NCBI GenBank assembly: GCA_964057225.1
Contig: OZ059899.1
Span: 10,912,001-10,976,000 of the forward strand
Source of the DNA: Auanema rhodensis
Taxonomy: Eukaryota > Animalia > Nematoda
Direction of reading: 5' to 3'
Length of the DNA stretch: 64,000 nt
The translations under genes were made by a program, and so were the position numbers. Of the stretch, positions 40,080 to 62,427 are shown piece after piece (position 1 is the first letter of the stretch; each line of letters opens with the position of its first letter). The notes beneath the pieces were generated by a model. The model was not told the origin of the DNA, ran no database searches, and worked only from the letters and a program-made list of their open reading frames with translations.

Positions 40080-40563
40080 TACGAAAGTACGAAATAACAA
40101 AGCGCTGATTATAGGAAACGTGAATGAATGCAGATATTCTCAATTCCGATTCATTAACTAGATCGTGGTCAGCATTTTACAACATTGATAAAATAGAAAC
40201 TGAGAAAAAAACATCAACAAATAACACTATTAACTTGGTTTTTTAACAGCTTTTTTATATTTCTTTTTTCACTATGAGAGAACTTATATTTATTGCTTTT
40301 TCAAAATTTTCCATTTTTAACATTATACATCTTGACTATCACACATTGAGAACAACAGTTGGCAATGTTGGTTGTCACGTCATATTTCATGCAGTTAGAT
40401 TTTCAGACACATTAATACCTTTGACCATTCTTCTTATGAGTTTTGTAACAATAGATCGTAATAGGAAATGAATTGCTATAATATGAAAAAATACAAGACA
40501 TAGTCAACATTGATTTCCAAAAATAGTATCATGTTTGCTTGTTATTCAATTAGAACACTTATT

Positions 40564-40921
40564 CGTTCCATTCGGATGATCAATGCATTACATTCATATG
40601 ACGAAGCTGTAGCAGGCGGGTTAGAGTCAGAGAATGCGAGACTGAGAGAAGACGACCCGCCCTTTTCCATATTACAACACTTCAGCTTTGCCTCAGGGAC
40701 GATCATGGATGGTTGGTCGTTCTCTCTCTGTTCTCTATTAGTTTAACCTTTACTTAGTTATATGTATCTTATTGTAATCACGTAGATATAATAAACCAAT
40801 CTTTCTCGAGTCTTATGTTTATCCTTATGCTCCATGTTTAACCGCTACATCTGGAATACTACCACGCTCATCTTGTAGACTCCATTGGTCTGTAAGATCG
40901 ACGCGGGAGCATAACGGAACG
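40564..40921 (+). repeat. 5' LTR (358 bp), termini CGTTCC...GGAACG
   Basis: Starts exactly where array sequence stops (cacttatt|cgttcc) and ends directly before the PBS. It has a terminal inverted repeat and AATAAA at 40790-40795. Confidence 0.85.
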
Positions 40922-40934
40922 TGGAGGTTCCACC
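40922..40934 (+). promoter_or_regulatory. Primer-binding site complementary to the tRNA-Gln 3' end
   Basis: TGGAGGTTCCACC is the complement of GGTGGAACCT-CCA, the conserved metazoan tRNA-Gln 3' end (recalled sequence). Confidence 0.85.
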
Positions 40935-42428
40935 TCGAACTTATCACAATTTTTTTTTCCTTCTCTTTAATGTTTGTGTTGTTAATTCATTTTCAAATTT
41001 CTTTCATCTCTCTTTTTCTCATACCATCTACTCTATGTCTTAACACAATACGGAGGGGCCAACAACGTTAAATGGGAACAGAGGCAAGGAATCCTTTTTT
41101 TTTTAAAGAAGGATTATACGTTTCGAGATTATTATTTTCCCGTTTGTTCACAAAAATTCTTTCGTCTGAACCTTTAAATTTCGTATCCTTGCTTATAACA
41201 TCTGAAATGCTCTGTTACCCAACCTTGAAGCTTGATGAGGGCTTTAGGCTGAATTAGTGAACAAATTCACCTAAAGTAATTGTTATTTCGTATTTCCCAC
41301 GCTTTCTCCTTTTTAAGGATTAATTTTGGCTTCAAGGAAAGAATAACTTCGGTTATATCTTTATATTTCGTGGATGAAGTTTGTTTTGCGATCAGGACTA
41401 TTTTATTTGGCGTTACGATTTCGTTCAGACAAATTTTGCTTCTAACATCCTAAATTTATAATCAGTACGCATGAAAAAAATTACACGGGAAACCTCACCA
41501 AAAAGGGAGGATTGTTAATTTATAGATCGCTATAGTCCGAAAAATCCTGTTGAAAAATGTTATCTCGAATTTGAATCATGATTAACACAGGTCGTGTTGG
41601 CTAAAGCATATCGGTTTGGATTTTCTCCCCTTACTGAATGTCACCTTCCTCATACCGTTATTGTTGTTCAGAAGCATAAGACTCACGCATTGAACCTTAT
41701 TCCAACTTTAATACTAGTTCTTGTAATATTTAGCCATTTAACTCTGCTTTTATTTCAAAATTCGATTTCTGATCACGAAATACCTACATTCATCATTGCG
41801 AAACGCTCTTTTGTAAAACTAATATTACGAATCCCATGACTTTTGTTACAACGAAACATGCGAGCTACACCAAATGTATTTGAAAACCAGATTGTAAAGA
41901 AACAAAAATTATTTTTGGTCACAAAAGAGAAATTGGTGCACATTTATTGTTAAACTGCTCTTTTATCAAAAGCATGTTACGAATTACACCATAAGTTTTG
42001 TTGCAAGATGACACACCACATGGCCGAGAAACTAGTGTAACAAAACATAAGTTTAGTCAGCATGAGGAAAATGGTTGCATACAAATCAGTAAAATGTGCT
42101 GTAATTGAACGAATATTACGAATTACACTAAACGTTTTGTAAAATAACAGCTTGGTCACCCCAGATGTTTTGTGAATCAGATTTTCAACTACAGAGAAAA
42201 TACGGAGAGCACCAGAGTCCCGATATCACACAGTAGAAGGCGGATCCATCGCCATTGGCCAAGGCATCGACCTCATTCTCACAAGTTGTCGATACGACAC
42301 CGGTCGCTCTCCAAAGCCTTTCTCATTTTGCCTACATCCTCATCCTTATTCACCGCATTCTTTAACGTCTCAACATCCCACACGTTACCAAGCACTCAAG
42401 GTTTTTTCAAACCAAGAGTTCTAGCAAG

Positions 42429-45400
42429 GTGGCTAAGAGATTCCATTCAGCCGTACCTATAAGTACGCATTTCGATTCCCAAGACTCAGCTCCCTTTACC
42501 AGAAGTCGAGCTCGAGCTCAAGACGTCGCTATATTAGAAGAGGAGCAGAAAGTCGACAAGAAGCCGGATAATTTCCTTATTCCTACTACTGATTCTGTCT
42601 CACCTACTGAACAACTAGGCGACCCGGACTACGTACCTACTATAGAAGAAGAACTATCAATCATTGTGGAGGAACAAACACCGATCACTCCTAAAAAGGT
42701 ACGCTCCTCTAATTCTAATAAAAATAAGAAAAATCAAAACATCAGCGACGCTTCTCTCTCTCTCTCACTAACTGAACCAACCGATTCCCCTTTACTTTCA
42801 AAAACTTCTAGCGCGGGTGGGCTTAGTTCTCTTAGAAACATTGTTACTGATCTTTTTAACCTTTCGCCTAAAGATAAAACTTTCAACACCAAGCGCAAAA
42901 GCAGATATTCATCAGTCCCTAACATTAATATCTCACCAATTCAACCACCTGCACCAAATACCAGTATTCATCAAACTTCTACTCCCATCTTAACAACAAC
43001 AGACTCACTTCCTAAGGCACCCAATAGACCTATTCCATCCACGCAAACAACCCCTATTTTGGAGACCCCACCAATAACAGGTAGAACGATCAAAATACCA
43101 TCTACCCGTACGAATAACATCATGACGGAAGCTGTTTCCTCACTACCTGGGGCAGGGAAAACAACAATCGCGCAAGCCTTACTTTCGCCTTACTGTCCAA
43201 CTTACGACGGCAGTCGTAACTTCCGTGATTTTACGGGTAAATTCAACTTGTTTGCTAATGCCATTGGCCTTGTTATCCCTGAAAGGTTAGCACTTCTTCC
43301 TTTGCTTCTCAAAAATGAAGCAGCAGAAGAAGCTTACAGACAAGTTCCTGAACAACTTAAAACAACTGGTTCGTGGAATGATCTGATTAGAGCACTAACA
43401 TCGAAGCTCTGCCCTGAATATAACCAAGACCCTGCACTTATTAACCTTCAAAACACCACGCAAGGGGAATTGACAATTGATGCATACGCCCAAGCATTAA
43501 GAACAATGGCATTGAGTGCATTTGCATCTGATGACCCACATAAAGATCAAATACTGAGATCAACATTCCTCAGAGGACTTAAAAATTCTCTAAAACCAGC
43601 TGTGATCCGAGCAAAGCCAAAATCCTTCACAGAAGCGATTGAAGCAGCTCGCTGGGAGGAATCGATAGTGAACCAAACAACAGACACGCAATCGATGTTG
43701 GTCAACGCTGTGAACAAAGCACTAGCACCCTTTGCGCGTAATGATGAGAGACGAGATAGCCAAACATTTAATCGCAATTATCAACGCGATAACCAAATGA
43801 TAAGAAATAATCAAAATTATCAAAATAATCAAAATTATCAAAATTATCAAAAAAATAAAAACTTTTCTAATTTCAATAATAATCGAAACCGTTACGGTTC
43901 TTTCGCTAATAATAATCGCCGTACAAATTATAACGAACAAGATAATAGGCAATCGAGTTCTGATTGGCATCAAAGAAATTATAATTTTCGTCATAACAAC
44001 CAACGAGGTAGATTCAATAACAACAACGGACAAAGAAGAGTTCAATTCAAAAATCCAAGAGACAACTCAAGAGGAAGAGATAGAAGCTCAACAAGAATAA
44101 ACTCGGTCACCCTTTCGCCTTTGACGCTCACAGTTATCATGGCAATAACAGCAGCAATATTCTTGCCCTGTGCATCTACATATCAAATCTGTACAAGAGC
44201 AACAGGAGGCGCATTACTTATGCCACCAACAATCAGAAAATGCAGATTAACAGAGAAAAACCATGTGCTACGTACAGAAGTTCATCTGTACACAAGAAAT
44301 CACACAGCACACGAATGGGATGCGTGGCGTTGTTCAGAGGAAGTACACAAGTTATGCGTACGAGACCTGCTATTCCTCCGCGATACGAACAGAACAATAA
44401 ATAGAATACAGCCCATAGGAGAGCGCGAATGCAGACAGGCGATCCGCGATCGCAAGTGGAATAACATAGAACTGCAACGCATTGATAGTATCACCCAAGC
44501 AACTCCGGAGCCCTCCTATGACCCAGCGCGCGCGTTCAACCGCGACGCGTGCGAGGAGCGGTCACGTCTAATATTAGAGCGCGGAGTCATGACCCGTATG
44601 CCTGACGATACAATATTGTCAAACTTAATATTAAACACGGAAGGATGCAATGCACATCATGGTAATTGTGAATCAAGTACATCAATAATAATATGGGACC
44701 CACAAACCACTGCTTCACGTTGTAATTACATCGATATGCATACATATGACGCTATCATTAGTCAAGATACTATTTTAATCCCTAGTACACAATCGGCACT
44801 TATTCTTTCGAGCAAACCAACTCCGAAACCTATTTCTTCTTGCTTCAGGCAGCCAGCGTTCCATACGACATCAGGAAATTATATCATTCTTCCTAAATTT
44901 CCAAACGACAACAATATAACCACCCTTATTGAAAGAGAGTTCAAAAAGCTGCCGTTTAAAAGACCAAAACGTGCAGTCACCGAAGGATGTTCTTTCCCAC
45001 TGGATCAAGATCGGATCAACGAAGTTGAAGATTATGAAACAGTATTGCTTCACGTCTGTCCATATACTTTCCTAAGACCATTAATGAGTAATCCCGGTAT
45101 TACTTCAATTATTCCTATAATCAAAGGAAGACGTTTAGTAGATCCAACATACTCTCTAAAGGCATGGATAACATCACATAAAGAAAAATTCGAATTTTTC
45201 TTCAGAATTCAAATAAATGAACATTCTGTTCGACATTTTCTCAAGCAATACGATTTCAGTGATAAAGAAGAAGCTCTGCTATATTATATAGCACAAAGAG
45301 AATTAGCCATTACTACAAAGGCAGCAATATCATACTTGACATCTGAACAGCTTCTCGAACAAATATCAGATCGTTTGACAGTAATCGAATTCGATGAAAT

Positions 45401-48400
45401 CATAAGGAAGAAAGAAGGTTCATATCGCGAACGAATTGAAAGCATAGCTCTCAATTTAACCAATACACCAGTTATAATTGAAGAAGGACTGACAGTTCCA
45501 TCACGACAAGAAGTCCTACAAACGTTCATACAAATGCCACCAATAAGGAAACGTATACTAACTGACGAGGAAGAGAAGAAAAGCGAATTCATTAAGGCAA
45601 CGATCAATTTACTAAGAGAACTAAAAACCCTCACAACAGTACGATGGAATAAAACTGCAGCATTTATTGATGACAGAAAATTTATAAAATTGCCAGCATC
45701 ACGACAATTCATGCCAAATACAGATAAACTATTTTATGACAGGAAGAATAATTATGGAATACCGATCGGTCCACACCCTAAGCTGATCAAGCCCAGCAAT
45801 CTTTCAAAGAAATTATTATTGGAAATATTTTTACCCCTGCTCAATAATGTAAAAACACCTTATACATCGAGTAGGATAACACAAGAACAACTTCAAATCT
45901 TAATGGCAGAGAAAAATGAAACAAATTTTCGGCAAATCGCAACGCGGACATCCAGCGTCGCGGCAGGCGGCGCGGCTAGCGTCGCTGCAGGCGGCGCGGC
46001 TAGCGGCGCGGTTGTGACACCAGTCCAACCTTTGATCGAACAGAAGGGAACAATCCAATCAGTTACCACAATACAGCCGCATATAACGAACAATCCTCAC
46101 ACAAATGCAACAACCACCACAAGAGCACCATCATGGAGGCAACAGCCATCAACAACGGCGCCTCACACGACCGCTGCGACAACAGCACGCACAACAACAT
46201 CAACCGCTCGTTCGCCAACAACAACAAGAAGCTATGCCATATACAAAGACGCACAGATTCCAAAAATACAAGAGACAACCGAAGCCTCTCCAACATTGAT
46301 TCGAAAAAACCGAGCTTCCTCAACACCATCAGTAGAAACCTCAAATTTAGTGGAAGCAAATGCGAGATACATAGCAACGAAAATTGACTCGGTACAAGAG
46401 TTTCGTCAAAATATATCGAACAAAATAGCCCAAGATCATTTACAGTATGCTACTACAATGATCCAAGAGGAATTGCAGAAACATTTTGAAGAATCATACG
46501 AATCGATTTGCGAGATACAAAATCGGTATCTGGAATTATGGAAATCAATTCTACAAATTGAACCAACAATCGCAATGCGAACAATACTGGGAAGAGAAGA
46601 TATAGCCGCACGGTTTGTAGGCAATGAAATTTTGCATATACATGTATGCCCTACAGTGCTAGAGAAAACCATTTATCACAATCACACCGTAAATGGCACA
46701 TGCTATCTCGAAACCCCAGTCTGGACACAAGACGGACAGTTACTGTTTGCAGCACCCGGATCCAAGGATCTTTTACCTCATGGTAAAGAAATAAGCTGTG
46801 ATCACGTACCAACAGATATCTGGTCTAGCGAAGGTGAATGGAAAGGAATTAATGGGACTGCAGACGTCAATCTTGTATCAATGTGGGACGGACTTCATCA
46901 CGAAAAAATAACACCATTAAAATTCACCGGAGCTCACTTATACACTAATTTATCGTCTCGTGTATACTCAATGACCACAGCCATAGCTTACGGTGCGAGT
47001 TTAGCATCGATTCGTCAGAATCACGTTCTTCACACAATTCACAATGATCCAAAGATATCAGCTACATTCAGTGTACTAAAGAAAAGTAGCGACTACATAT
47101 CGAAAGCTCAAGAATTCACCAAGAGCACATGGAAGTCATTCATCGATACAATTGCAGGAACGATTGAGCGAACACTAATAACGATCGGTGCAATTACATT
47201 ATTTACCATCATACTCTTTGTGATAGGTTTCATTGTAAAGATCTATTTCTTCAAACCAGTAGGCATACCAGTTATGCATATTGCACTCAAAGATCACGAC
47301 AGTGATCTACCAACATACGAAGAAACTTTGGAATTAGTTAGTCATCCGGATCAACCGATTCCAAGACACATAATGAAACAATACTATCCATCAATGCTCA
47401 CATTCATACCAATCGCACTACCATTAGTTTGCTCGATTTCCAAAAAGAAAGATCAAGCACTACCACTTCTATGGATGACTGTTAATGATAGACTGATCCT
47501 AACTTTATGGGACTCAGGTTCGTCCGTCAGTTACATAAGAATATCGACACTACACTACTTAGCTTTGAATGACTTTGTTAAGAAGAATACATTAAGAGCA
47601 ACAACAGCGAACGGATCAGAATTTGTATTCATTGGTACTATCGACTTAACCGTCGAAATAGCCGGTTACGAAATCGACCATACATTCTTCATATCAGACG
47701 ACAAAGACTGTCCATCGCCAGCGTTGATTGGATTAGATTTCATGAAAACACTTGACTGTCAAAACATTGGCATGAAACTAAGACCATACAAAAGAACACT
47801 GGAAATTGGAAATCATGTAGTACCTTTGGCTAGCGGAATTAACGGGGATATTAACAGGATATCAAAAACTGTTAATTTGATAACCTTGGAGCCGCGGAGT
47901 CTACTTCCTCGACAAGTTTTTAATTTCCAAGTCCAATTAGAGAACCCAATCGGAGAAGACTTAATCGCTATGATTAAACCAAACGACAATACTCCTCTCT
48001 CACCTCGATACGACACAGCATTTCGCGATGTTAACTCCATCAATATCCAATTCCGGAACAATTCTAAAGAATTCATAGAAATACCGGCCGGCACTGTGAT
48101 TGCAGAAGCCGAAATAGGATCTATACCGGACTATGAAATCTTCTCAACAGAACAACAGTACGACTATATTCCACCAGAAGCAGACTGGGAAGGCAAATTA
48201 CCTCACTTCCCTGGTGATTTCATGAAAGAACTTGACCTAAAAGAGGCTGATCTTACGCAACGACAAAAAGACGAACTACGAAACATCATTCGTCAACGTA
48301 AGAAGGCATTCCTCAATGAAGATAAAAAGATAGGATTGTTCAAAGGACCAGTAGAACACAAGATACCACTACGAACGGATATGGATATGCCAAAGCCACG

Positions 48401-51158
48401 AATTTCACGTATACCTCTCGGGAAACAAGAAGAGGTAGAAAGACAAGTCCAAGAAATGCTCGAGCAAGGGATAATAGAACGATCGACATCTTTGTTCAAC
48501 AGCCCTGTCGTTCTCGTTAAGAAAAAAGACGAAACATTCCGTTTCGTTACGGATTTCCGAGCCTTAAATAACGTTACAAGAAAACAAACATATGTGATTC
48601 CTAACATCTCTGATATCATTGACTTAGCGGCTGGATCACAATACTTTTCTAATTTTGATCTTGTTTCTGGCTTTTTCCAAATACCATTATTGAAGAAGGA
48701 TAGACCACTCACATCCTTTACCACCAATAGTGGGACTTATCAATACAGGAGAATGCCTATGGGATTATGTGGTGCGCCACATACCTTTCAAACAGCCGTG
48801 AGATATCTCCAAAGTAAATGTAAATGCCGACTATTTGTCTATTTGGACGATTTACTAGTCATATCAGACAGCGCAGAACAACACCTCGAAGACATCAAAG
48901 AAGTATTACTCGCTGTAGAAAGACTAGGATTTAAGATTAAACTCAAGAAATGTTCATTTGCAAGACCAGAAGTGAAATTTCTCGGACTCATTGTCGGAAG
49001 AGACGGAGTTAAGCCCGATCAACAGAAAGTTTCCGCCATCCGCGATTACCCTGCTCCTCAAACACCCACAGGAGTAAGAGCATTCTTAGGAATGGTCGGA
49101 TTCTTTAGAAAATTTATTAAAGATTTTGCACATATAGCAAGTCCGCTGTATGACCTTACTAAGCTAGACGCAGACTTCAATTGGACTAGCGAATGTCAAC
49201 GTTCACTAGATAAGCTAAAGGAACGACTAATCGAAGCACCGGTACTGAAACCACCACGATCAGACCGAACTTTCATCATTGAAAGTGATGGCAGCAACAT
49301 CGCCATAGGCGCAGTATTACTGCAGCCCGAAGATCCAAACGAACCATTCAAGAACTTACATCCAATTGCTTTCGCAAGTAGGAAATTAGTAAAAGCAGAA
49401 CGTAACTATGCTCCCATAGAGATAGAAGCCTTAGGCTTAGTTTACGCTCTAGCACAGTTTCGAACATACATACTTGGATCACATTCAATTTGCATCACCG
49501 ATCATCGCCCATTGACAAGCTTACTAACTAGAAGAGACCTATTTGGAAGACTAGCAAAGTTCCAATTGGTCATACAGGAATACGATATTGAGATCAAATA
49601 TCGAGAAGGCAGATTAAACAAAGTCTGTGACGCACTCTCTAGATACATTGGAGATGAAGCTAACGATCCAAAGACGTCGAACAAGAAACAAAAGACGAAT
49701 TCGAAAGAGAAAATTGAGACACAACAAGTAAATGTTGTGAAGTTACCAGAATTCAGCTCAATCCAACAAAATACTCCTTGGATCAAGAGAACAATAGCTG
49801 AGATTGAATACAGAACGAAGAAAAATATGATTCAAAATGATCGTTATTGTGTTATAAACAACTTACTCTACACAAAACCAAGCGTCAAAAGACCTCATCC
49901 AGCGTTAATATTGCCATCGGATAGTGATATAATTAACAAAATCATTGAAGAATTTCATGAAGACCCAACAATCGGGGCGCATCAAGGAATCAACAAAACA
50001 AAAGAAGCCATATTACGAAGATTTTCCTGGACTAACATGCAGAACGACATAGCAAAATACGTAAAACAGTGCATCAAATGTGCACAACGAAAGAAAGATC
50101 CTCATGCTATGACCGTACAACCAATGGGTCAATTTAACATACCAACAAAACCATTTGAGAGAATACATATGGATATCATGGGACCATTCCCAACATCAAA
50201 AAGGAACAACAGCTATGTCCTCACAATACAAGACTCTTTCTCCAAATGGGCTACAACTATCGCCATACCAACAATTGTTAGTGAAGTTGTCATTGATAGA
50301 TTCCTCAGAAACTTTGTATATGTCTATGGACCACCGAATCGCTTAATAACAGACCGCGGTTCCAACTTCCTATCAAGGAAATTTGAAGACATGTGCGAAA
50401 AACTCGGTATCAAACATGAATCAACACTCCCACATCAGAAGAATTCCAATGGACAAGTAGAAAGACTTCATAGAACGTTAGAAGAAGGACTAACACATTA
50501 TCTCAACGAAGATGTCACTGATTGGGACATGTTTTTGCCAAAAATTACCTTTGCATTGAACACCACAACGCATGCAACCACAGGAATATCACCATACGTT
50601 GTACTATTCGGGAAAGAAAGCCGTTTGAGATTGGATAAAGATTTATACCCCGAAACAACTGAACCAAAGGAAATTTCAAAGGAGATTGAAAATATTGAGA
50701 AAATCCGAAGCAAACAGAAAACAATCATTCAAGAAAATTTGGAAAAGCATCAAGAATTAGCAAAAAAGAAACATGATGCTCGATTACGCACTCACGAAAG
50801 AGATATACAAGAAGGAGACTGCGTTATGTTAGCTGTGAAAATGCACAAGCCAGGACAAAAGCTTCGGAAAGCTTATGATGGACCATTTGAAGTTATAAAT
50901 GTGAAGGGAAACATGGTTCAAATCAAAAACCTTTTCGGAAAGATTCAAGACGTTCACAAGGACAATCTCAAATTATTTAATCGAGAAACAGATGACGGAA
51001 TCCCACATAAGCCCAGTACACGTACAGACAGCTCAGACGATGACAGCGATATCGAAATCATAGAGGTTATCAACGGAAACAACAACGAGGAAGACTCTTA
51101 TGACGAACCAGAAGACCTTTCGGATACAAATTGGCTACCATCAAGAAAAAACCATTAA
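42429..51158 (+). CDS. Single Gag-Env-Pol polyprotein: capsid, N/Q/R-rich NC, signal peptide, class III-like glycoprotein, TM, aspartic protease, RT, RNase H, integrase
   Basis: Capsid motifs PTYDGSRNF and QGELTIDAY; hydrophobic segment 44106-44180; RPKR 44961-44972; TM 47175-47252; LWDSGS with D at 47511; YLDD 48840-48851; RNase H ESDGS and NYAPIEIEAL; IN HHCC 49956-50081; D(50172), D(50352)-35-E(50460); GPF motif. The true start is uncertain: the frame opens at 42366 and the first ATG is at 43122. Confidence 0.93.
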   Translation: MAKRFHSAVPISTHFDSQDSAPFTRSRARAQDVAILEEEQKVDKKPDNFLIPTTDSVSPTEQLGDPDYVPTIEEELSIIVEEQTPITPKKVRSSNSNKNKKNQNISDASLSLSLTEPTDSPLLSKTSSAGGLSSLRNIVTDLFNLSPKDKTFNTKRKSRYSSVPNINISPIQPPAPNTSIHQTSTPILTTTDSLPKAPNRPIPSTQTTPILETPPITGRTIKIPSTRTNNIMTEAVSSLPGAGKTTIAQALLSPYCPTYDGSRNFRDFTGKFNLFANAIGLVIPERLALLPLLLKNEAAEEAYRQVPEQLKTTGSWNDLIRALTSKLCPEYNQDPALINLQNTTQGELTIDAYAQALRTMALSAFASDDPHKDQILRSTFLRGLKNSLKPAVIRAKPKSFTEAIEAARWEESIVNQTTDTQSMLVNAVNKALAPFARNDERRDSQTFNRNYQRDNQMIRNNQNYQNNQNYQNYQKNKNFSNFNNNRNRYGSFANNNRRTNYNEQDNRQSSSDWHQRNYNFRHNNQRGRFNNNNGQRRVQFKNPRDNSRGRDRSSTRINSVTLSPLTLTVIMAITAAIFLPCASTYQICTRATGGALLMPPTIRKCRLTEKNHVLRTEVHLYTRNHTAHEWDAWRCSEEVHKLCVRDLLFLRDTNRTINRIQPIGERECRQAIRDRKWNNIELQRIDSITQATPEPSYDPARAFNRDACEERSRLILERGVMTRMPDDTILSNLILNTEGCNAHHGNCESSTSIIIWDPQTTASRCNYIDMHTYDAIISQDTILIPSTQSALILSSKPTPKPISSCFRQPAFHTTSGNYIILPKFPNDNNITTLIEREFKKLPFKRPKRAVTEGCSFPLDQDRINEVEDYETVLLHVCPYTFLRPLMSNPGITSIIPIIKGRRLVDPTYSLKAWITSHKEKFEFFFRIQINEHSVRHFLKQYDFSDKEEALLYYIAQRELAITTKAAISYLTSEQLLEQISDRLTVIEFDEIIRKKEGSYRERIESIALNLTNTPVIIEEGLTVPSRQEVLQTFIQMPPIRKRILTDEEEKKSEFIKATINLLRELKTLTTVRWNKTAAFIDDRKFIKLPASRQFMPNTDKLFYDRKNNYGIPIGPHPKLIKPSNLSKKLLLEIFLPLLNNVKTPYTSSRITQEQLQILMAEKNETNFRQIATRTSSVAAGGAASVAAGGAASGAVVTPVQPLIEQKGTIQSVTTIQPHITNNPHTNATTTTRAPSWRQQPSTTAPHTTAATTARTTTSTARSPTTTRSYAIYKDAQIPKIQETTEASPTLIRKNRASSTPSVETSNLVEANARYIATKIDSVQEFRQNISNKIAQDHLQYATTMIQEELQKHFEESYESICEIQNRYLELWKSILQIEPTIAMRTILGREDIAARFVGNEILHIHVCPTVLEKTIYHNHTVNGTCYLETPVWTQDGQLLFAAPGSKDLLPHGKEISCDHVPTDIWSSEGEWKGINGTADVNLVSMWDGLHHEKITPLKFTGAHLYTNLSSRVYSMTTAIAYGASLASIRQNHVLHTIHNDPKISATFSVLKKSSDYISKAQEFTKSTWKSFIDTIAGTIERTLITIGAITLFTIILFVIGFIVKIYFFKPVGIPVMHIALKDHDSDLPTYEETLELVSHPDQPIPRHIMKQYYPSMLTFIPIALPLVCSISKKKDQALPLLWMTVNDRLILTLWDSGSSVSYIRISTLHYLALNDFVKKNTLRATTANGSEFVFIGTIDLTVEIAGYEIDHTFFISDDKDCPSPALIGLDFMKTLDCQNIGMKLRPYKRTLEIGNHVVPLASGINGDINRISKTVNLITLEPRSLLPRQVFNFQVQLENPIGEDLIAMIKPNDNTPLSPRYDTAFRDVNSINIQFRNNSKEFIEIPAGTVIAEAEIGSIPDYEIFSTEQQYDYIPPEADWEGKLPHFPGDFMKELDLKEADLTQRQKDELRNIIRQRKKAFLNEDKKIGLFKGPVEHKIPLRTDMDMPKPRISRIPLGKQEEVERQVQEMLEQGIIERSTSLFNSPVVLVKKKDETFRFVTDFRALNNVTRKQTYVIPNISDIIDLAAGSQYFSNFDLVSGFFQIPLLKKDRPLTSFTTNSGTYQYRRMPMGLCGAPHTFQTAVRYLQSKCKCRLFVYLDDLLVISDSAEQHLEDIKEVLLAVERLGFKIKLKKCSFARPEVKFLGLIVGRDGVKPDQQKVSAIRDYPAPQTPTGVRAFLGMVGFFRKFIKDFAHIASPLYDLTKLDADFNWTSECQRSLDKLKERLIEAPVLKPPRSDRTFIIESDGSNIAIGAVLLQPEDPNEPFKNLHPIAFASRKLVKAERNYAPIEIEALGLVYALAQFRTYILGSHSICITDHRPLTSLLTRRDLFGRLAKFQLVIQEYDIEIKYREGRLNKVCDALSRYIGDEANDPKTSNKKQKTNSKEKIETQQVNVVKLPEFSSIQQNTPWIKRTIAEIEYRTKKNMIQNDRYCVINNLLYTKPSVKRPHPALILPSDSDIINKIIEEFHEDPTIGAHQGINKTKEAILRRFSWTNMQNDIAKYVKQCIKCAQRKKDPHAMTVQPMGQFNIPTKPFERIHMDIMGPFPTSKRNNSYVLTIQDSFSKWATTIAIPTIVSEVVIDRFLRNFVYVYGPPNRLITDRGSNFLSRKFEDMCEKLGIKHESTLPHQKNSNGQVERLHRTLEEGLTHYLNEDVTDWDMFLPKITFALNTTTHATTGISPYVVLFGKESRLRLDKDLYPETTEPKEISKEIENIEKIRSKQKTIIQENLEKHQELAKKKHDARLRTHERDIQEGDCVMLAVKMHKPGQKLRKAYDGPFEVINVKGNMVQIKNLFGKIQDVHKDNLKLFNRETDDGIPHKPSTRTDSSDDDSDIEIIEVINGNNNEEDSYDEPEDLSDTNWLPSRKNH
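44106..47252 (+). other. Env-like glycoprotein region inside the polyprotein (about aa 560-1608)
   Basis: Signal-like segment, Cys-rich ectodomain with NxS/T sequons (NHT, NRT, NIT, NLT, NKT, NGT, NLS), a furin site, a Thr-rich mucin-like stretch, a gB-like C-terminal half (LQY..., ICEIQN, IEPTIAMRTILGREDIAARFVG, CYLETPV) and a C-terminal TM helix. Confidence 0.8.
45954..46011 (+). repeat. GC-rich 24-bp in-frame tandem duplication (SVAAGGAA x2 plus a partial copy)
   Basis: agcgtcgcggcaggcggcgcggct agcgtcgctgcaggcggcgcggct agcggcgcgg. Confidence 0.9.
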
Positions 51159-51840
51159 CTCATGAGATATTATTGTAAATTGTTTTGTAATAACTTTCTT
51201 TAAAGTAATACTAGAACACAAATTTTGTAACGACTCCTCTAAAACAAGTCACTCTTAAGTCAAAAAGTAAACTAGAGCATAATGAACACGGGAAATGTGA
51301 GAAGATAATTCTTTTATCATATAGTTCGAACCTTCCTAATTTCAACTAACTTCCCCATACTAGATGAGATGAAAAATGAAAGACATAGTTTGCAACAATA
51401 TCTGAGCAACAGTCTTCACTTGAGTAATCAATGACTCAATTTGGAAGTTATTTGGTATTACGCAAAACTTTTCTTTTTTTTTCTAAACTCACACAAATTG
51501 AAACAAACAACCGAGCTCTAGCAAAAAAAAAATAGTTAACTTTTTATCTACACTTGTTGGAGCGCTATGCTTAAAAACTTTTTTTTTTATTTTATAAGCA
51601 CGTTCGCCAATAAAACATAGTCTAGTATTCGTTAAAGAGGGTTAAAACTTTCATAATTTGGTTAAAAAATTTTTTTAATTCTTTTCAGATACTGATGTTT
51701 TATATTGTATTATGTTCATATTATAAGAATTTTACGTAAAATATTGTATTGTAACATGTACTTTAATACACACATTAACCCTTCTGCTACAGTTAATCAA
51801 GTCAAAACTTTTGATTGTCGCGAGGACGCGACATAAACTC

Positions 51841-51849
51841 GAAAAAGGG
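51841..51849 (+). promoter_or_regulatory. Polypurine tract
   Basis: GAAAAAGGG lies 2 nt before the second LTR and is preceded by the hairpin TGTCGCG-AGGA-CGCGACA. Confidence 0.7.
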
Positions 51850-51851
51850 CA

Positions 51852-52209
51852 CGTTCCATTCGGATGATCAATGCATTACATTCATATGACGAAGCTGTAG
51901 CAGGCGGGTTAGAGTCAGAGAATGCGAGACTGAGAGAAGACGACCCGCCCTTTTCCATATTACAACACTTCAGCTTTGCCTCAGGGACGATCATGGATGG
52001 TTGGTCGTTCTCTCTCTGTTCTCTATTAGTTTAACCTTTACTTAGTTATATGTATCTTATTGTAATCACGTAGATATAATAAACCAATCTTTCTCGAGTC
52101 TTATGTTTATCCTTATGCTCCATGTTTAACCGCTACATCTGGAATACTACCACGCTCATCTTGTAGACTCCATTGGTCTGTAAGATCGACGCGGGAGCAT
52201 AACGGAACG
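51852..52209 (+). repeat. Second LTR: 3' LTR of copy 1 and 5' LTR of copy 2
   Basis: Identical by eye to 40564-40921 (offset 11288) and again followed by the PBS at 52210-52222. Confidence 0.88.
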
Positions 52210-55200
52210 TGGAGGTTCCACCTCGAACTTATCACAATTTTTTTTTCCTTCTCTTTAATGTTTGTGTTGTTAATTCATTTTCAAATTTCTTTCATCTCTC
52301 TTTTTCTCATACCATCTACTCTATGTCTTAACACAATACGGAGGGGCCAACAACGTTAAATGGGAACAGAGGCAAGGAATCCTTTTTTTTTTAAAGAAGG
52401 ATTATACGTTTCGAGATTATTATTTTCCCGTTTGTTCACAAAAATTCTTTCGTCTGAACCTTTAAATTTCGTATCCTTGCTTATAACATCTGAAATGCTC
52501 TGTTACCCAACCTTGAAGCTTGATGAGGGCTTTAGGCTGAATTAGTGAACAAATTCACCTAAAGTAATTGTTATTTCGTATTTCCCACGCTTTCTCCTTT
52601 TTAAGGATTAATTTTGGCTTCAAGGAAAGAATAACTTCGGTTATATCTTTATATTTCGTGGATGAAGTTTGTTTTGCGATCAGGACTATTTTATTTGGCG
52701 TTACGATTTCGTTCAGACAAATTTTGCTTCTAACATCCTAAATTTATAATCAGTACGCATGAAAAAAATTACACGGGAAACCTCACCAAAAAGGGAGGAT
52801 TGTTAATTTATAGATCGCTATAGTCCGAAAAATCCTGTTGAAAAATGTTATCTCGAATTTGAATCATGATTAACACAGGTCGTGTTGGCTAAAGCATATC
52901 GGTTTGGATTTTCTCCCCTTACTGAATGTCACCTTCCTCATACCGTTATTGTTGTTCAGAAGCATAAGACTCACGCATTGAACCTTATTCCAACTTTAAT
53001 ACTAGTTCTTGTAATATTTAGCCATTTAACTCTGCTTTTATTTCAAAATTCGATTTCTGATCACGAAATACCTACATTCATCATTGCGAAACGCTCTTTT
53101 GTAAAACTAATATTACGAATCCCATGACTTTTGTTACAACGAAACATGCGAGCTACACCAAATGTATTTGAAAACCAGATTGTAAAGAAACAAAAATTAT
53201 TTTTGGTCACAAAAGAGAAATTGGTGCACATTTATTGTTAAACTGCTCTTTTATCAAAAGCATGTTACGAATTACACCATAAGTTTTGTTGCAAGATGAC
53301 ACACCACATGGCCGAGAAACTAGTGTAACAAAACATAAGTTTAGTCAGCATGAGGAAAATGGTTGCATACAAATCAGTAAAATGTGCTGTAATTGAACGA
53401 ATATTACGAATTACACTAAACGTTTTGTAAAATAACAGCTTGGTCACCCCAGATGTTTTGTGAATCAGATTTTCAACTACAGAGAAAATACGGAGAGCAC
53501 CAGAGTCCCGATATCACACAGTAGAAGGCGGATCCATCGCCATTGGCCAAGGCATCGACCTCATTCTCACAAGTTGTCGATACGACACCGGTCGCTCTCC
53601 AAAGCCTTTCTCATTTTGCCTACATCCTCATCCTTATTCACCGCATTCTTTAACGTCTCAACATCCCACACGTTACCAAGCACTCAAGGTTTTTTCAAAC
53701 CAAGAGTTCTAGCAAGGTGGCTAAGAGATTCCATTCAGCCGTACCTATAAGTACGCATTTCGATTCCCAAGACTCAGCTCCCTTTACCAGAAGTCGAGCT
53801 CGAGCTCAAGACGTCGCTATATTAGAAGAGGAGCAGAAAGTCGACAAGAAGCCGGATAATTTCCTTATTCCTACTACTGATTCTGTCTCACCTACTGAAC
53901 AACTAGGCGACCCGGACTACGTACCTACTATAGAAGAAGAACTATCAATCATTGTGGAGGAACAAACACCGATCACTCCTAAAAAGGTACGCTCCTCTAA
54001 TTCTAATAAAAATAAGAAAAATCAAAACATCAGCGACGCTTCTCTCTCTCTCTCACTAACTGAACCAACCGATTCCCCTTTACTTTCAAAAACTTCTAGC
54101 GCGGGTGGGCTTAGTTCTCTTAGAAACATTGTTACTGATCTTTTTAACCTTTCGCCTAAAGATAAAACTTTCAACACCAAGCGCAAAAGCAGATATTCAT
54201 CAGTCCCTAACATTAATATCTCACCAATTCAACCACCTGCACCAAATACCAGTATTCATCAAACTTCTACTCCCATCTTAACAACAACAGACTCACTTCC
54301 TAAGGCACCCAATAGACCTATTCCATCCACGCAAACAACCCCTATTTTGGAGACCCCACCAATAACAGGTAGAACGATCAAAATACCATCTACCCGTACG
54401 AATAACATCATGACGGAAGCTGTTTCCTCACTACCTGGGGCAGGGAAAACAACAATCGCGCAAGCCTTACTTTCGCCTTACTGTCCAACTTACGACGGCA
54501 GTCGTAACTTCCGTGATTTTACGGGTAAATTCAACTTGTTTGCTAATGCCATTGGCCTTGTTATCCCTGAAAGGTTAGCACTTCTTCCTTTGCTTCTCAA
54601 AAATGAAGCAGCAGAAGAAGCTTACAGACAAGTTCCTGAACAACTTAAAACAACTGGTTCGTGGAATGATCTGATTAGAGCACTAACATCGAAGCTCTGC
54701 CCTGAATATAACCAAGACCCTGCACTTATTAACCTTCAAAACACCACGCAAGGGGAATTGACAATTGATGCATACGCCCAAGCATTAAGAACAATGGCAT
54801 TGAGTGCATTTGCATCTGATGACCCACATAAAGATCAAATACTGAGATCAACATTCCTCAGAGGACTTAAAAATTCTCTAAAACCAGCTGTGATCCGAGC
54901 AAAGCCAAAATCCTTCACAGAAGCGATTGAAGCAGCTCGCTGGGAGGAATCGATAGTGAACCAAACAACAGACACGCAATCGATGTTGGTCAACGCTGTG
55001 AACAAAGCACTAGCACCCTTTGCGCGTAATGATGAGAGACGAGATAGCCAAACATTTAATCGCAATTATCAACGCGATAACCAAATGATAAGAAATAATC
55101 AAAATTATCAAAATAATCAAAATTATCAAAATTATCAAAAAAATAAAAACTTTTCTAATTTCAATAATAATCGAAACCGTTACGGTTCTTTCGCTAATAA

Positions 55201-56607
55201 TAATCGCCGTACAAATTATAACGAACAAGATAATAGGCAATCGAGTTCTGATTGGCATCAAAGAAATTATAATTTTCGTCATAACAACCAACGAGGTAGA
55301 TTCAATAACAACAACGGACAAAGAAGAGTTCAATTCAAAAATCCAAGAGACAACTCAAGAGGAAGAGATAGAAGCTCAACAAGAATAAACTCGGTCACCC
55401 TTTCGCCTTTGACGCTCACAGTTATCATGGCAATAACAGCAGCAATATTCTTGCCCTGTGCATCTACATATCAAATCTGTACAAGAGCAACAGGAGGCGC
55501 ATTACTTATGCCACCAACAATCAGAAAATGCAGATTAACAGAGAAAAACCATGTGCTACGTACAGAAGTTCATCTGTACACAAGAAATCACACAGCACAC
55601 GAATGGGATGCGTGGCGTTGTTCAGAGGAAGTACACAAGTTATGCGTACGAGACCTGCTATTCCTCCGCGATACGAACAGAACAATAAATAGAATACAGC
55701 CCATAGGAGAGCGCGAATGCAGACAGGCGATCCGCGATCGCAAGTGGAATAACATAGAACTGCAACGCATTGATAGTATCACCCAAGCAACTCCGGAGCC
55801 CTCCTATGACCCAGCGCGCGCGTTCAACCGCGACGCGTGCGAGGAGCGGTCACGTCTAATATTAGAGCGCGGAGTCATGACCCGTATGCCTGACGATACA
55901 ATATTGTCAAACTTAATATTAAACACGGAAGGATGCAATGCACATCATGGTAATTGTGAATCAAGTACATCAATAATAATATGGGACCCACAAACCACTG
56001 CTTCACGTTGTAATTACATCGATATGCATACATATGACGCTATCATTAGTCAAGATACTATTTTAATCCCTAGTACACAATCGGCACTTATTCTTTCGAG
56101 CAAACCAACTCCGAAACCTATTTCTTCTTGCTTCAGGCAGCCAGCGTTCCATACGACATCAGGAAATTATATCATTCTTCCTAAATTTCCAAACGACAAC
56201 AATATAACCACCCTTATTGAAAGAGAGTTCAAAAAGCTGCCGTTTAAAAGACCAAAACGTGCAGTCACCGAAGGATGTTCTTTCCCACTGGATCAAGATC
56301 GGATCAACGAAGTTGAAGATTATGAAACAGTATTGCTTCACGTCTGTCCATATACTTTCCTAAGACCATTAATGAGTAATCCCGGTATTACTTCAATTAT
56401 TCCTATAATCAAAGGAAGACGTTTAGTAGATCCAACATACTCTCTAAAGGCATGGATAACATCACATAAAGAAAAATTCGAATTTTTCTTCAGAATTCAA
56501 ATAAATGAACATTCTGTTCGACATTTTCTCAAGCAATACGATTTCAGTGATAAAGAAGAAGCTCTGCTATATTATATAGCACAAAGAGAATTAGCCATTA
56601 CTACAAA
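52210..56607 (+). mobile_element. Second, tandem, 3'-truncated copy of the internal region of the Gypsy element
   Basis: Repeats 40922-45319 at offset 11288 and breaks within env at ...ccattactacaaa. Confidence 0.95.
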
Positions 56608-56653
56608 CTACATTCCATTTTTAACATTATACATCTTGACTATCACACATTGA
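53717..56653 (+). pseudogene. Truncated Gag-Env ORF running out into array sequence
   Basis: The translation is identical to the first ~963 aa of the full ORF; the tail NYIPFLTLYILTITH comes from junction filler and array sequence. Confidence 0.88.
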
Positions 56654-56974
56654 GAACAACAGTTGGCAATGTTGGTTGTCACGTCATATTTCATGCAGTT
56701 AGATTTTCAGACACATTAATACCTTTAACCATTCTTCTTATGAGTTTTGTAACGATAGATCGTAATAGGATATGAATTGCTATAATATGAAAAAATACAA
56801 GACATAGTCAACATTGATTTCCCCAAATAGTATCATGTTTGCTTGTTATTCAATTATAACACTTTTTTTTTGATTGTTTTCTTGAAATATTCTTTTTTTT
56901 CTTTAACAAAGTTATGACTGAGATCAAAATTTGAACTTACTTTTGAACAATTAAACAGAAATTTAAAAAATATT

Positions 56975-57048
56975 TGCCGCCAGCAGGGGTCGAACCTGCG
57001 ACCTTGGGCTTATTAGACCCACGCTCTAACCGACTGAGCTATGGCGGC
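56975..57048 (-). tRNA. tRNA-Ile(AAT), first copy right of the LTR element
   Basis: Identical to the consensus copy. Confidence 0.97.
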
Positions 57049-60000
57049 TACGAAAGTACGAAATAACAAAGCGCTGATTATAGGAAACGTGAATGAATGC
57101 AGATATTCTCAATTCCGATTCATTAACTAGATCGTGGTCAGCATTTTACAACATTGATAAAATAGAAACTGAGAAAAAAACATCAACAAATAACACTATT
57201 AACTTGGTTTTTTAACAGCTTTTTTATATTTCTTTTTTTACTATGAGAGAACTTATATTTAATGCTTTTTCAAAATTTTCCATTTTTAACATTATACATC
57301 TTGACTATCACACATTGAGAACAACAGTTGGCAATGTTGGTTGTCACGTCATATTTCATGCAGTTAGATTTTCAGACACATTAATACCTTTGACCATTCT
57401 TCTTATGAGTTTTGTAACGATAGATCGTAATAGGAAATGAATTGCTATAATATGAAAAAATACAAGACATAGTCAACATTGATTTCCAAAAATAGTATCA
57501 TGTTTGCTTGTTATTCAATTAGAACACTTATTTTTTGATTGTTTTCTTGAAATATTCTTTTTTTTTCTTTAACAAAGTTATGACTGAGATCAAAATTTGA
57601 ACTTACTTTTGAACAATTAAACAGAAATTTAAAAAATATTTGCCGCCAGCAGGGGTCGAACCTGCGACCTTGGGCTTATTAGACCCACGCTCTAACCGAC
57701 TGAGCTATGGCGGCTACGAAAGTACGAAATAACAAAGCGCTGATTATAGGAAACGTGAATGAATGCAGATATTCTCAATTCCGATTCATTAACTAGATCG
57801 TGGTCAGCATTTTACAACATTGATAAAATAGAAACTGAGAAAAAAACATCAACAAATGACACTATTAACTTGGTTTTTTTAACAGCTTTTTTATATTTCT
57901 TTTTTCACTATGAGAGAACTTATATTTATTGCTTTTTCAAAATTTTCCATTTTTAACATTATACATCTTGACTATCACACATTGAGAACAACAGTTGGCA
58001 ATGTTGGTTGTCACGTCATATTTCATGCAGTTAGATTTTCAGACACATTAATACCTTTGACCATTCTTCTTATGAGTTTTGTAACAATAGATCGTAATAG
58101 GAAATGAATTGCTATAATATGAAAAAATACAAGACATAGTCAACATTGATTTCCAAAAATAGTATCATGTTTGCTTGTTATTCAATTAGAACACTTATTT
58201 TTTGATTGTTTTCTTGAAATATTCTTTTTTTTTCTTTAACAAAGTTATGACTGAGATCAAAATTTGAACTTACTTTTGAACAATTAAACAGAAATTTAAA
58301 AAATATTTGCCGCCAGCAGGGGTCGAACCTGCGACCTTGGGCTTATTAGACCCACGCTCTAACCGACTGAGCTATGGCGGCTACGAAAGTACGAAATAAC
58401 AAAGCGCTGATTATAGGAAACGTGAATGAATGCAGATATTCTCAATTCCGATTCATTAACTAGATCGTGGTCAGCATTTTACAACATTGATAAAATAGAA
58501 ACTGAGAAAAAAACATCAACAAATGACACTATTAACTTGGTTTTTTAACAGCTTTTTTATATTTCTTTTTTCACTATGAGAGAACTTATATTTATTGCTT
58601 TTTCAAAATTTTCCATTTTTAACATTATACATCTTGACTATCACACATTGAGAACAACAGTTGGCAATGTTGGTTGTCACGTCATGTTTCATGCAGTTAG
58701 ATTTTCAGACACATTAATACCTTTGACCATTCTTCTTATGAGTTTTGTAACGATAAATCGTAATAGGAAATGAATTGCTATAATATGAAAAAATACAAGA
58801 CATAGTCAACATTGATTTCCGAAAATAGTATCATGTTTGCTTGTTATTCAATTAGAACACTTATTTTTTGATTGTTTTCTTGAAATATTCTTTTTTTTTC
58901 TTTAACAAAGTTATGACTGAGATCAAAATTTGAACTTACTTTTGAACAATTAAACAGAAATTTAAAAAATATTTGCCGCCAGCAGGGGTCGAACCTGCGA
59001 CCTTGGGCTTATTAGACCCACGCTCTAACCGACTGAGCTATGGCGGCTACAAAAGTACGAAATAACAAAGCGCTGATTATAGGAAACGTGAATGAATGCA
59101 GATATTCTCAATTCCGATTCATTAACTAGATCGTGGTCAGCATTTTACAACATTGATAAAATAGAAACTGAGAAAAAACATCAACAAATGACACTATTAA
59201 CTTGGTTTTTTGAACAGCTTTTTTATATTTCTTTTTTCACTATGAGAGAACTTATATTTATTGCTTTTTCAAAATTTTCCATTTTTAACATTATACATCT
59301 TGACTATCACACATTGAGAACAACAGTTGGCAATGTTGGTTGTCACGTCATTTTTCATGCAGTTAGATTTTCAGACACATTAATACCTTTAACCATTCTT
59401 CTTATGAGTTTTGTAACGATAGATCGTAATAGGATATGAATTGCTATAATATGAAAAAATACAAGACATAGTCAACATTGATTTCCCCAAATAGTATCAT
59501 GTTTGCTTGTTATTCAATTATAACACTTTTTTTTTGATTGTTTTCTTGAAATATTCTTTTTTTTCTTTAACAAAGTTATTACTGAGATCAAAATTTGAAC
59601 TTACTTTTGAACAATTAAACAGAAATTTAAAAAATATTTGCCGCCAGCAGGGGTCGAACCTGCGACCTTGGGCTTATTAGACCCACGCTCTAACCGACTG
59701 AGCTATGGCGGCTACGAAAGTACGAAATAACAAAGCGCTGATTATAGGAAACGTGAATGAATGCAGATATTCTCAATTCCGATTCATTAACTAGATCGTG
59801 GTCAGCATTTTACAACATTGATAAAATAGAAACTGAGAAAAAAACATCAACAAATAACACTATTAACTTGGTTTTTTAACAGCTTTTTTATATTTCTTTT
59901 TTAACTATGAGAGAACTTATATTTAATGCTTTTTCAAAATTTTCCATTTTTAACATTATACATCTTGACTATCACACATTGAGAACAACAGTTGGCAATG

Positions 60001-61637
60001 TTGGTTGTCACGTCATATTTCATGCAGTTAGATTTTCAGACACATTAATACCTTTAACCATTCTTCTTATGAGTTTTGTAACGATAGATCGTAATAGGAT
60101 ATGAATTGCTATAATATGAAAAAATACAAGACATAGTCAACATTGATTTCCCCAAATAGTATCATGTTTGCTTGTTATTCAATTATAACACTTTTTTTTT
60201 GATTGTTTTCTTGAAATATTCTTTTTTTTCTTTAACAAAGTTATGACTGAGATCAAAATTTGAACTTACTTTTGAACAATTAAACAGAAATTTAAAAAAT
60301 ATTTGCCGCCAGCAGGGGTCGAACCTGCGACCTTGGGCTTATTAGACCCACGCTCTAACCGACTGAGCTATGGCGGCTACGAAAGTACGAAATAACAAAG
60401 CGCTGATTATAGGAAACGTGAATGAATGCAGATATTCTCAATTCCGATTCATTAACTAGATCGTGGTCAGCATTTTACAACATTGATAAAATAGAAACTG
60501 AGAAAAAAACATCAACAAATAACACTATTAACTTGGTTTTTTAACAGCTTTTTTATATTTCTTTTTTTACTATGAGAGAACTTATATTTAATGCTTTTTC
60601 AAAATTTTCCATTTTTAACATTATACATCTTGACTATCACACATTGAGAACAACAGTTGGCAATGTTGGTTGTCACGTCATATTTCATGCAGTTAGATTT
60701 TCAGACACATTAATACCTTTGACCATTCTTCTTATGAGTTTTGTAACGATAGATCGTAATAGGAAATGAATTGCTATAATATGAAAAAATACAAGACATA
60801 GTCAACATTGATTTCCAAAAATAGTATCATGTTTGCTTGTTATTCAATTAGAACACTTATTTTTTGATTGTTTTCTTGAAATATTCTTTTTTTTTCTTTA
60901 ACAAAGTTATGACTGAGATCAAAATTTGAACTTACTTTTGAACAATTAAACAGAAATTTAAAAAATATTTGCCGCCAGCAGGGGTCGAACCTGCGACCTT
61001 GGGCTTATTAGACCCACGCTCTAACCGACTGAGCTATGGCGGCTACGAAAGTACGAAATAACAAAGCGCTGATTATAGGAAACGTGAATGAATGCAGATA
61101 TTCTCAATTCCGATTCATTAACTAGATCGTGGTCAGCATTTTACAACATTGATAAAATAGAAACTGAGAAAAAAACATCAACAAATGACACTATTAACTT
61201 GGTTTTTTTAACAGCTTTTTTATATTTCTTTTTTCACTATGAGAGAACTTATATTTATTGCTTTTTCAAAATTTTCCATTTTTAACATTATACATCTTGA
61301 CTATCACACATTGAGAACAACAGTTGGCAATGTTGGTTGTCACGTCATATTTCATGCAGTTAGATTTTCAGACACATTAATACCTTTGACCATTCTTCTT
61401 ATGAGTTTTGTAACGATAGATCGTAATAGGAAATGAATTGCTATAATATGAAAAAATACAAGACATAGTCAACATTGATTTCCCCAAATAGTATCATGTT
61501 TGCTTGTTATTCAATTAGAACACTTATTTTTTGATTGTTTTCTTGAAATATTCTTTTTTTTTTCTTTAACAAAGTTATGACTGAGATCAAAATTTGAACT
61601 TACTTTTGAACAATTAAACAGAAATTTAAAAAATATT

Positions 61638-61711
61638 TGCCGCCAGCAGGGCTCGAACCTGCGACCTTGGGCTTATTAGACCCACGTTCTAACCGACTGA
61701 GCTATGGCGGC
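61638..61711 (-). tRNA. tRNA-Ile(AAT) variant with two substitutions (T-loop change and D-stem mismatch)
   Basis: gggCtcgaac at 61652 and cacgTtcta at 61687. Confidence 0.8.
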
Positions 61712-61798
61712 TACGAAAGTACGAAATAACAAAGCGCTGATTATAGGAAACGTGAATGAATGCAGATATTCTCAATTCCGATTCATTAACTAGATCGT

Positions 61799-62149
61799 TG
61801 TCGCGATAAGCGAGTGAGTTTGTATAAATTTTATCTTCAACAATTGTTTTATTTGTCTCTCCTGTTCTCTCCCTCTCTCTCTCTCTCTCTCTCTCCTCTT
61901 TCTTCTTTCTTGTAACTTCCTAAGTAATTTTTATCCATACCACATGTTGTGTTATACATGTGGCATGACTAACTCTTTGTTTCAGGCTGACGACCGCCCA
62001 CGAGAAGAGATCAGTCTTACATTTTTAACGTTCGCAGTCAGTGATTCTATTCCGTGCTTGTCTTGTTAATTCATCAATAAACCCTTTTCTACATATTCGC
62101 TTTGTGTTTTATTTCCAACCATACTATACACTTGCGGTATAACGCCACA
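61799..62149 (+). repeat. 5' LTR of the BEL/Pao element (351 bp)
   Basis: Begins TGTCGCGAT where the array stops (tagatcgt|tg) and ends AACGCCACA (7/9 inverted match), 3 nt before the PBS. It contains a (CT)n run at about 61873-61895 and an AATAAA. Confidence 0.8.
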
Positions 62150-62152
62150 AAT

Positions 62153-62164
62153 TGGTGCATCGGC
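62153..62164 (+). promoter_or_regulatory. Primer-binding site complementary to the tRNA-Gly(GCC) 3' end
   Basis: TGGTGCATCGGC is the complement of GCCGATGCA-CCA (recalled tRNA-Gly end). Confidence 0.8.
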
Positions 62165-62427
62165 TAGTTCAGATCTTAGCCGCTTCAAGTCCCGCGTGGC
62201 AGGTGAGATACAGCTCAAACCAAGCGTGTTTGAGCAAAAAACATACTTAATAGAAATCGTGGCAACCATTAGTCCACGTCAAGTCACACCAAAAAGACTT
62301 GAACCATAAGCAAACTCTGCAGACAGAAACAGAGATTCACTATCACATATACTGTGATCACCAAACAAACAAAAAAAAAAGAGAAAGTAAAAGGAATATA
62401 AGCGTTATTCCTACATCTACGACAAAA

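Follow-up and report, generated by a model that had tools for sequence, protein, structure and literature searches.

The CA-3' dinucleotide at which integrases join element DNA to the host is invariant in retroviruses and matters for the Ty1 integrase in vitro. The original prediction for the locus described here had taken this terminal CA-3' to be almost invariant across retroviral and LTR-element integrases; the statement holds for retroviruses but is too strong for LTR elements at large, as insect errantiviruses and the non-TGCA elements of plants illustrate. The LTRs of the Drosophila errantiviruses end in AGT...AnT, and because these ends depart from TG...CA, the errantivirus integrase must accept another terminus. 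In plants, the LTR_retriever survey recorded seven non-TGCA LTR motifs, all of which keep the first T. We found no report of LTRs with CG...CG ends in a literature search that was limited in reach.

Envelope-bearing elements of the Ty3/gypsy order are also known from nematodes, where a group of gag-env-pol elements encodes a gB-type envelope (Sacco et al. 2022, J Gen Virol, as cited in PMC13524379). A recent survey of 'errantiviruses' (eLife 2026, PMC13524379) covers this gB-type nematode group and delimits LTRs by self-BLAST; the accessible parts of its text do not discuss the terminal bases. The class of element considered below is already described, and it is the ends of its LTRs that concern us here.

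The window, as we call the whole stretch of 64,000 nucleotides that was analyzed, consists from position 1 to 61798 of 666-bp tandem units with tRNA-Ile(AAT) genes on the minus strand (n = 67). The main block of this array is as follows.

1154 to 40563, resuming at 56613 to 61798, minus strand: tRNA-Ile(AAT) tandem array with a 666-bp unit and one tRNA gene per unit

The array is broken at three places, namely 66-1153, 40564-56607, and 61799 to the window end, and three unrelated retroelements are thus found within 64 kb of array, at differing distances from the tRNA genes. The first break is a 1088-bp piece with a minus-strand reverse-transcriptase frame (RVT_1) and the same array sequence, at least 65 bp of it, on either side; it is probably a truncated non-LTR element. 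The second, the subject of this report, lies ~485 bp away from the nearest tRNA-Ile gene. The third (61799-64000) is another LTR element, with a DUF1759 gag and a frame that stays open to the window end. A search of the window against Rfam returned the array tRNAs and gave no match on the retrovirus-like element of the second break.

We consider it probable that the second break opens with the left end of an endogenous Ty3/gypsy-order element in the tRNA-Ile array, with 358-bp LTRs whose integrated ends read 5'-CGTT...AACG-3'. The features on which this reading is built are listed below.

40564 to 40921, plus strand: left LTR, 358 bp, starting CGTTCC and ending GGAACG; identical to 51852-52209, with array identity stopping at 40563
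40564 to 40572, plus strand: left arm of the terminal inverted repeat, 8/9 complementary to 40913-40921
40913 to 40921, plus strand: right arm of the terminal inverted repeat, the final 9 nt ahead of the primer-binding site
40922 to 40939, plus strand: primer-binding site (PBS), 18 nt, starting TGG, complementary to a tRNA-Gln-like 3' end
51841 to 51849, plus strand: polypurine tract GAAAAAGGG, 9 nt, identified from the sequence
51850 to 51851, plus strand: CA, the two bases separating the purine tract and the LTR, complementary to the TG after the LTR right end
51852 to 52209, plus strand: second LTR, with the purine tract to its left and the PBS to its right

The two LTRs are spaced 11288 bp apart and show zero differences. 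The left end can be read directly against host DNA. Positions 40300-40563 match intact array units at 100%, and at the very next base the intact units carry T where the window has C40564, which bears out the earlier claim that the host array ends exactly at CGTTCC. The base preceding the LTR is T in the left copy and A in the inner copy, which fixes where the repeat begins without ambiguity. The left integrated end is thus CG, seen at a host junction in one copy and in agreement with the purine tract plus two nucleotides that precede the other.

No TG occurs within 13 nt of this left end, and the nearest CA at the other end lies 10 nt before the PBS. The nearest such pair, TG at 40577/51865 and CA at 40910/52198, could in principle be a set of canonical ends lying further in, the outer 13 and 10 nt then being spacers. 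We regard this as very improbable. In the left copy, the 13 nt ahead of the TG do not belong to the array. The reading also calls for unusually long spacers, 15 nt behind the purine tract and 10 nt in front of the PBS, and inspection by eye reveals no obvious inverted repeat at the TG and CA positions.

The inner copy supplies a second landmark for the left end. It had been claimed that a polypurine tract plus 2 nt precedes the inner CGTTCC, and this is what we find: GAAAAAGGG occupies 51841-51849, CA follows at 51850-51851, and CGTTCC begins at 51852. A different start was considered as well, in which the LTR would begin with the TG at 51816, 36 nt further left, the left copy having lost its first 36 bp. 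What speaks for it is that the 8-mer TGTCGCGA found there also opens the canonical LTR of the element at 61799, which is unrelated. That element, however, is BEL/Pao-like, with a DUF1759 gag of the kind typical of BEL/Pao, and it is otherwise dissimilar. The main LTR shows no homology to the LTR of the 61799 element except for one shared 9-mer, TTGTCGCGA, which is TGTCGCGA with the preceding T, and the sharing of TGTCGCGA between 51816 and 61799-61806 appears to be due to chance. Moreover, no purine tract lies ahead of the TG at 51816, and an inverted repeat with the only nearby CA reaches 4/10 (read by eye) as against 8/9 for the CG ends. We also considered a 7-bp hairpin at 51816-51833 as a meaningful structure and rejected it, as it is no better than those of shuffled sequences (z = -1.2). 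An LTR starting from TG 51816, which the original prediction had named as the outcome that would overturn it, is therefore not favored within the window, and we think it improbable.

The same BEL/Pao-like neighbor provides an internal check on how such ends are mapped. Its left LTR (61799-62149) has TG at the array junction and a 7/9 inverted repeat ending in CA, followed by three bases and a PBS starting with TGG. Because this element lies in the same array and, mapped likewise, shows TG...CA ends, the reading of junctions against the array evidently works.

At the right end of the LTR, the evidence is of another kind. The TGG of the PBS starts at 40922 and 52210, immediately 3' of GGAACG in both copies. 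Compared with human tRNA-Gln-CUG (as printed in PMC11096365), the complement of the PBS is identical over the last 13 nt and agrees at 15/18 nt overall. The proposal that a tRNA-Gln PBS abuts GGAACG at 40921 and 52209 accordingly stands, on a 13-nt match to the 3' end of the human tRNA. The 8/9 terminal inverted repeat was likewise recovered, the first and last 9 nt of the LTR being complementary at 8/9 positions, and it extends to 10/11 when the two bases beyond each end (CA...TG) are included. Among positions taken at random in the element, ~0.3% have a match of at least 8/9 to the left end at a distance of 0-6 nt.

Two further repeats touch the LTR/PBS border. The LTR end GGAAC and the GTTCC of the PBS form a 5-bp inverted repeat across it (40916-40931), and the 6-mer GTTCCA is found both at the LTR start (40565-40570) and inside the PBS. 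Since GTTCCA is shared by the LTR start and the PBS, the LTR ends look like the acceptor stem of the tRNA that serves as primer.

Of the CG...CG termini originally claimed, then, the left CG is seen at the host junction. Both LTR right ends lie in the same LTR/PBS context, and the CG-3' at the right is accordingly deduced from PBS adjacency and the inverted repeat. The ends fit the form xGTT...AACx of the general motif TGTTRNR...YNYAACA, in which the outermost pair alone is changed, and changed symmetrically. This close fit leaves room for the idea that the family is canonical (TGTT...AACA) and that the parent of this copy carried point changes at both outermost bases, so that CG...CG would be a one-off: the ends depart from the common motif at the outermost pair and nowhere else. 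Two independent changes at both terminal positions would be needed, however, in a parent that was still integrating, and symmetrical changes are what is expected of a co-adapted recognition site. We give the one-off explanation very little weight.

Identity between the two copies does not stop at the LTR. Positions 40564-45319 equal 51852-56607 at 100% over 4756 bp, and the layout is an LTR, a full internal region (40922-51851), a second LTR, and a repeat of the internal region's first 4398 bp, after which the insertion ends as listed here.

52210 to 56607, plus strand: truncated second internal copy, identical to 40922-45319, stopping within the coding frame
56608 to 56612, no strand assigned: irregular right junction made up of five filler bases, with the array restarting at 56613

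The array restarts 255 bp out of register relative to the left break, a shift that can be read in a tandem array as a 255-bp duplication or as the loss of 411 bp plus whole units. Nowhere in the window does the right end of an LTR meet host DNA. As the right edge falls within coding sequence, neither a right LTR/host junction nor a target-site duplication, which in this order of elements measures 4-6 bp, can be read. The arrangement of LTR, internal region, LTR, and truncated internal region reflects either secondary rearrangement or faulty assembly, and it removes the right-end evidence; it could have arisen by unequal LTR exchange followed by deletion, by irregular integration, or by an error of assembly. 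The 100% identity of the LTRs may partly stem from this duplication and is for that reason no proof of recent activity with CG ends.

The irregularity on the right bears on the left as well. The evidence against the proposed ends is that one copy of the family and one LTR/host junction are at hand, and that with an irregular right side the left could be irregular too. The junction at 40563/40564 might then be a rearrangement or assembly breakpoint, with the true LTR end differing by a few or many bases. An irregular left junction is the most serious rival to our reading, and it draws on the character of the right edge (it falls in internal sequence, has 5 filler bases, and shifts the register by 255 bp) and on the 4756 bp repeated at 100%, as would be seen in a collapsed or chimeric assembly or after a recent rearrangement. 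Such a breakpoint, however, would have to fall at the very base that starts the inverted repeat and that, in the other copy, comes two bases behind the purine tract, and we judge it unlikely, if less so than the other alternatives.

The internal region between the LTRs encodes the domains listed below.

42429 to 51158, plus strand: single frame of 2909 codons without a stop, first ATG at 43122, covering gag, a gB-like envelope, protease, RT, RNase H, and integrase
43299 to 43685, plus strand: gag (Retrotrans_gag / Ty3 capsid-like), residues 291-419, by Pfam
46431 to 47255, plus strand: class III fusion glycoprotein-like domain (Monjiviricetes_fusion PF24664 / herpesvirus gB PF00606), residues 1335-1609, by Pfam
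47478 to 49583, plus strand: aspartyl protease (residues 1684-1773), RT, and RNase H, by Pfam
49923 to 50432, plus strand: integrase zinc-binding (HHCC) domain and catalytic core, by Pfam, with D2582 and D2642 inside the span

The first ATG appears only at codon 232, and the leader is ~2.2 kb long. Pfam places the pol domains in the order protease, RT, RNase H, integrase, all in one frame. Hydrophobic stretches are present at residues ~559-585 and ~1579-1613; the latter, which is anchor-like, is located where the Pfam gB-like match ends C-terminally, and the former lies well upstream of that match. The nearest proteins share this domain set, being 46-58% identical across pol and 53% identical across the envelope part, and their hosts are the rhabditid nematodes Caenorhabditis auriculariae, C. 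nigoni, C. remanei, C. brenneri, Diploscapter pachys, Auanema sp. JU1783, and Acrobeloides nanus. As the relatives come from nematodes and belong to the same group, the host of the present element is indicated to be a nematode.

The sequence identifies a retrovirus-like element with an apparently intact frame, belonging to the Ty3/gypsy order (Metaviridae). Direct LTRs, the order PR-RT-RNase H-IN, a tRNA PBS, and a purine tract, all features of that order, are present. The inverted-repeat ends in TG...CA that are usual, though not universal, in the order are absent: the inverted repeat is there, but the ends are CG...CG. The architecture it shares with its closest relatives places the element among the gag-env-pol elements of nematodes whose envelope is of gB type.

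The integrase itself looks conventional. Its best relatives among solved structures are the Ty3 integrase (7q5b, E = 3e-26, covering the zinc, core, and C-terminal parts) and the PFV integrase. The HHCC motif and the residues D2582, D2642, and E2678 are present, E2678 lying just outside the Pfam core match, and the D,D35E spacing (35 residues between D2642 and E2678) is ordinary. Alignment with the Ty3 and PFV integrases revealed no mark of altered end specificity. The residue seven positions after the catalytic E was tried as a specificity marker and set aside: PFV has K there, Ty3 has N, and the present integrase has E, and the position is uninformative because Ty3, with its N, uses CA ends. 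The limited literature checked gives no list of base-specific integrase contacts.

How CG...CG ends might be generated can be outlined from these landmarks. If plus-strand synthesis starts from the purine tract, the left cDNA end would carry two extra bases, which are absent from the integrated copy; a two-base loss at the left end would parallel that of retroviruses and Ty3. At the right, the cDNA end would be fixed by whichever base is copied first next to the tRNA primer. This would leave ...AACG-3' at both joined ends, and the integrase would join a 3'-terminal G (CG-OH) and not A (CA-OH). Whether a nematode envelope-bearing lineage has shifted the outermost pair of both LTR ends, with an integrase that joins CG-OH, is a proposition for which we see the case as evenly balanced. 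If true, it would be the first LTR family described that lacks the T at the front of the end motif as well as the A (or T) at its close. With the left end set against host DNA in a single copy, the CG...CG ends are a credible lead and not an established rule.

The closest described system is the gB-type nematode group. The present element has the same gag-gB-pol order and a Ty3/gypsy-type pol, and differs in that all domains are contained in one 2909-codon frame. Like the Drosophila errantiviruses (the gypsy, ZAM, and Idefix subgroups), it is an envelope-bearing Ty3/gypsy element with non-TG...CA ends. The errantiviruses, however, have a 3'-terminal T and another type of envelope, located after pol, whereas here the ends are CG...CG and the envelope-like domain is upstream of pol. 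The plant non-TGCA elements, such as Tos17 (TG..GA), AtRE1 (TA..TA), and TARE1 (TA..CA), are likewise non-canonical and missed by motif filters; unlike this element, whose first base is C, they are mostly Copia and have T as the first base. The expectation that LTR finders filtering for TG..CA would miss the family is in keeping with the LTR_retriever motif list, from which CG..CG is absent. If CG...CG holds in other copies, annotation pipelines restricted to TG...CA or to the listed plant motifs would overlook the family in nematode genomes or set its limits wrongly, the range of ends accepted by retroviral-type integrases would be wider, and a natural case would be at hand for asking which parts of an integrase read the terminal bases. 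A final comparison is with Ty3 of yeast, whose DNA ends need 3' processing before integration, as we propose for the left end here. Ty3 has TG...CA ends and inserts at the start sites of tRNA genes, whereas the A. rhodensis element appears to end in CG...CG and sits hundreds of base pairs from the nearest gene of the array that it interrupts.
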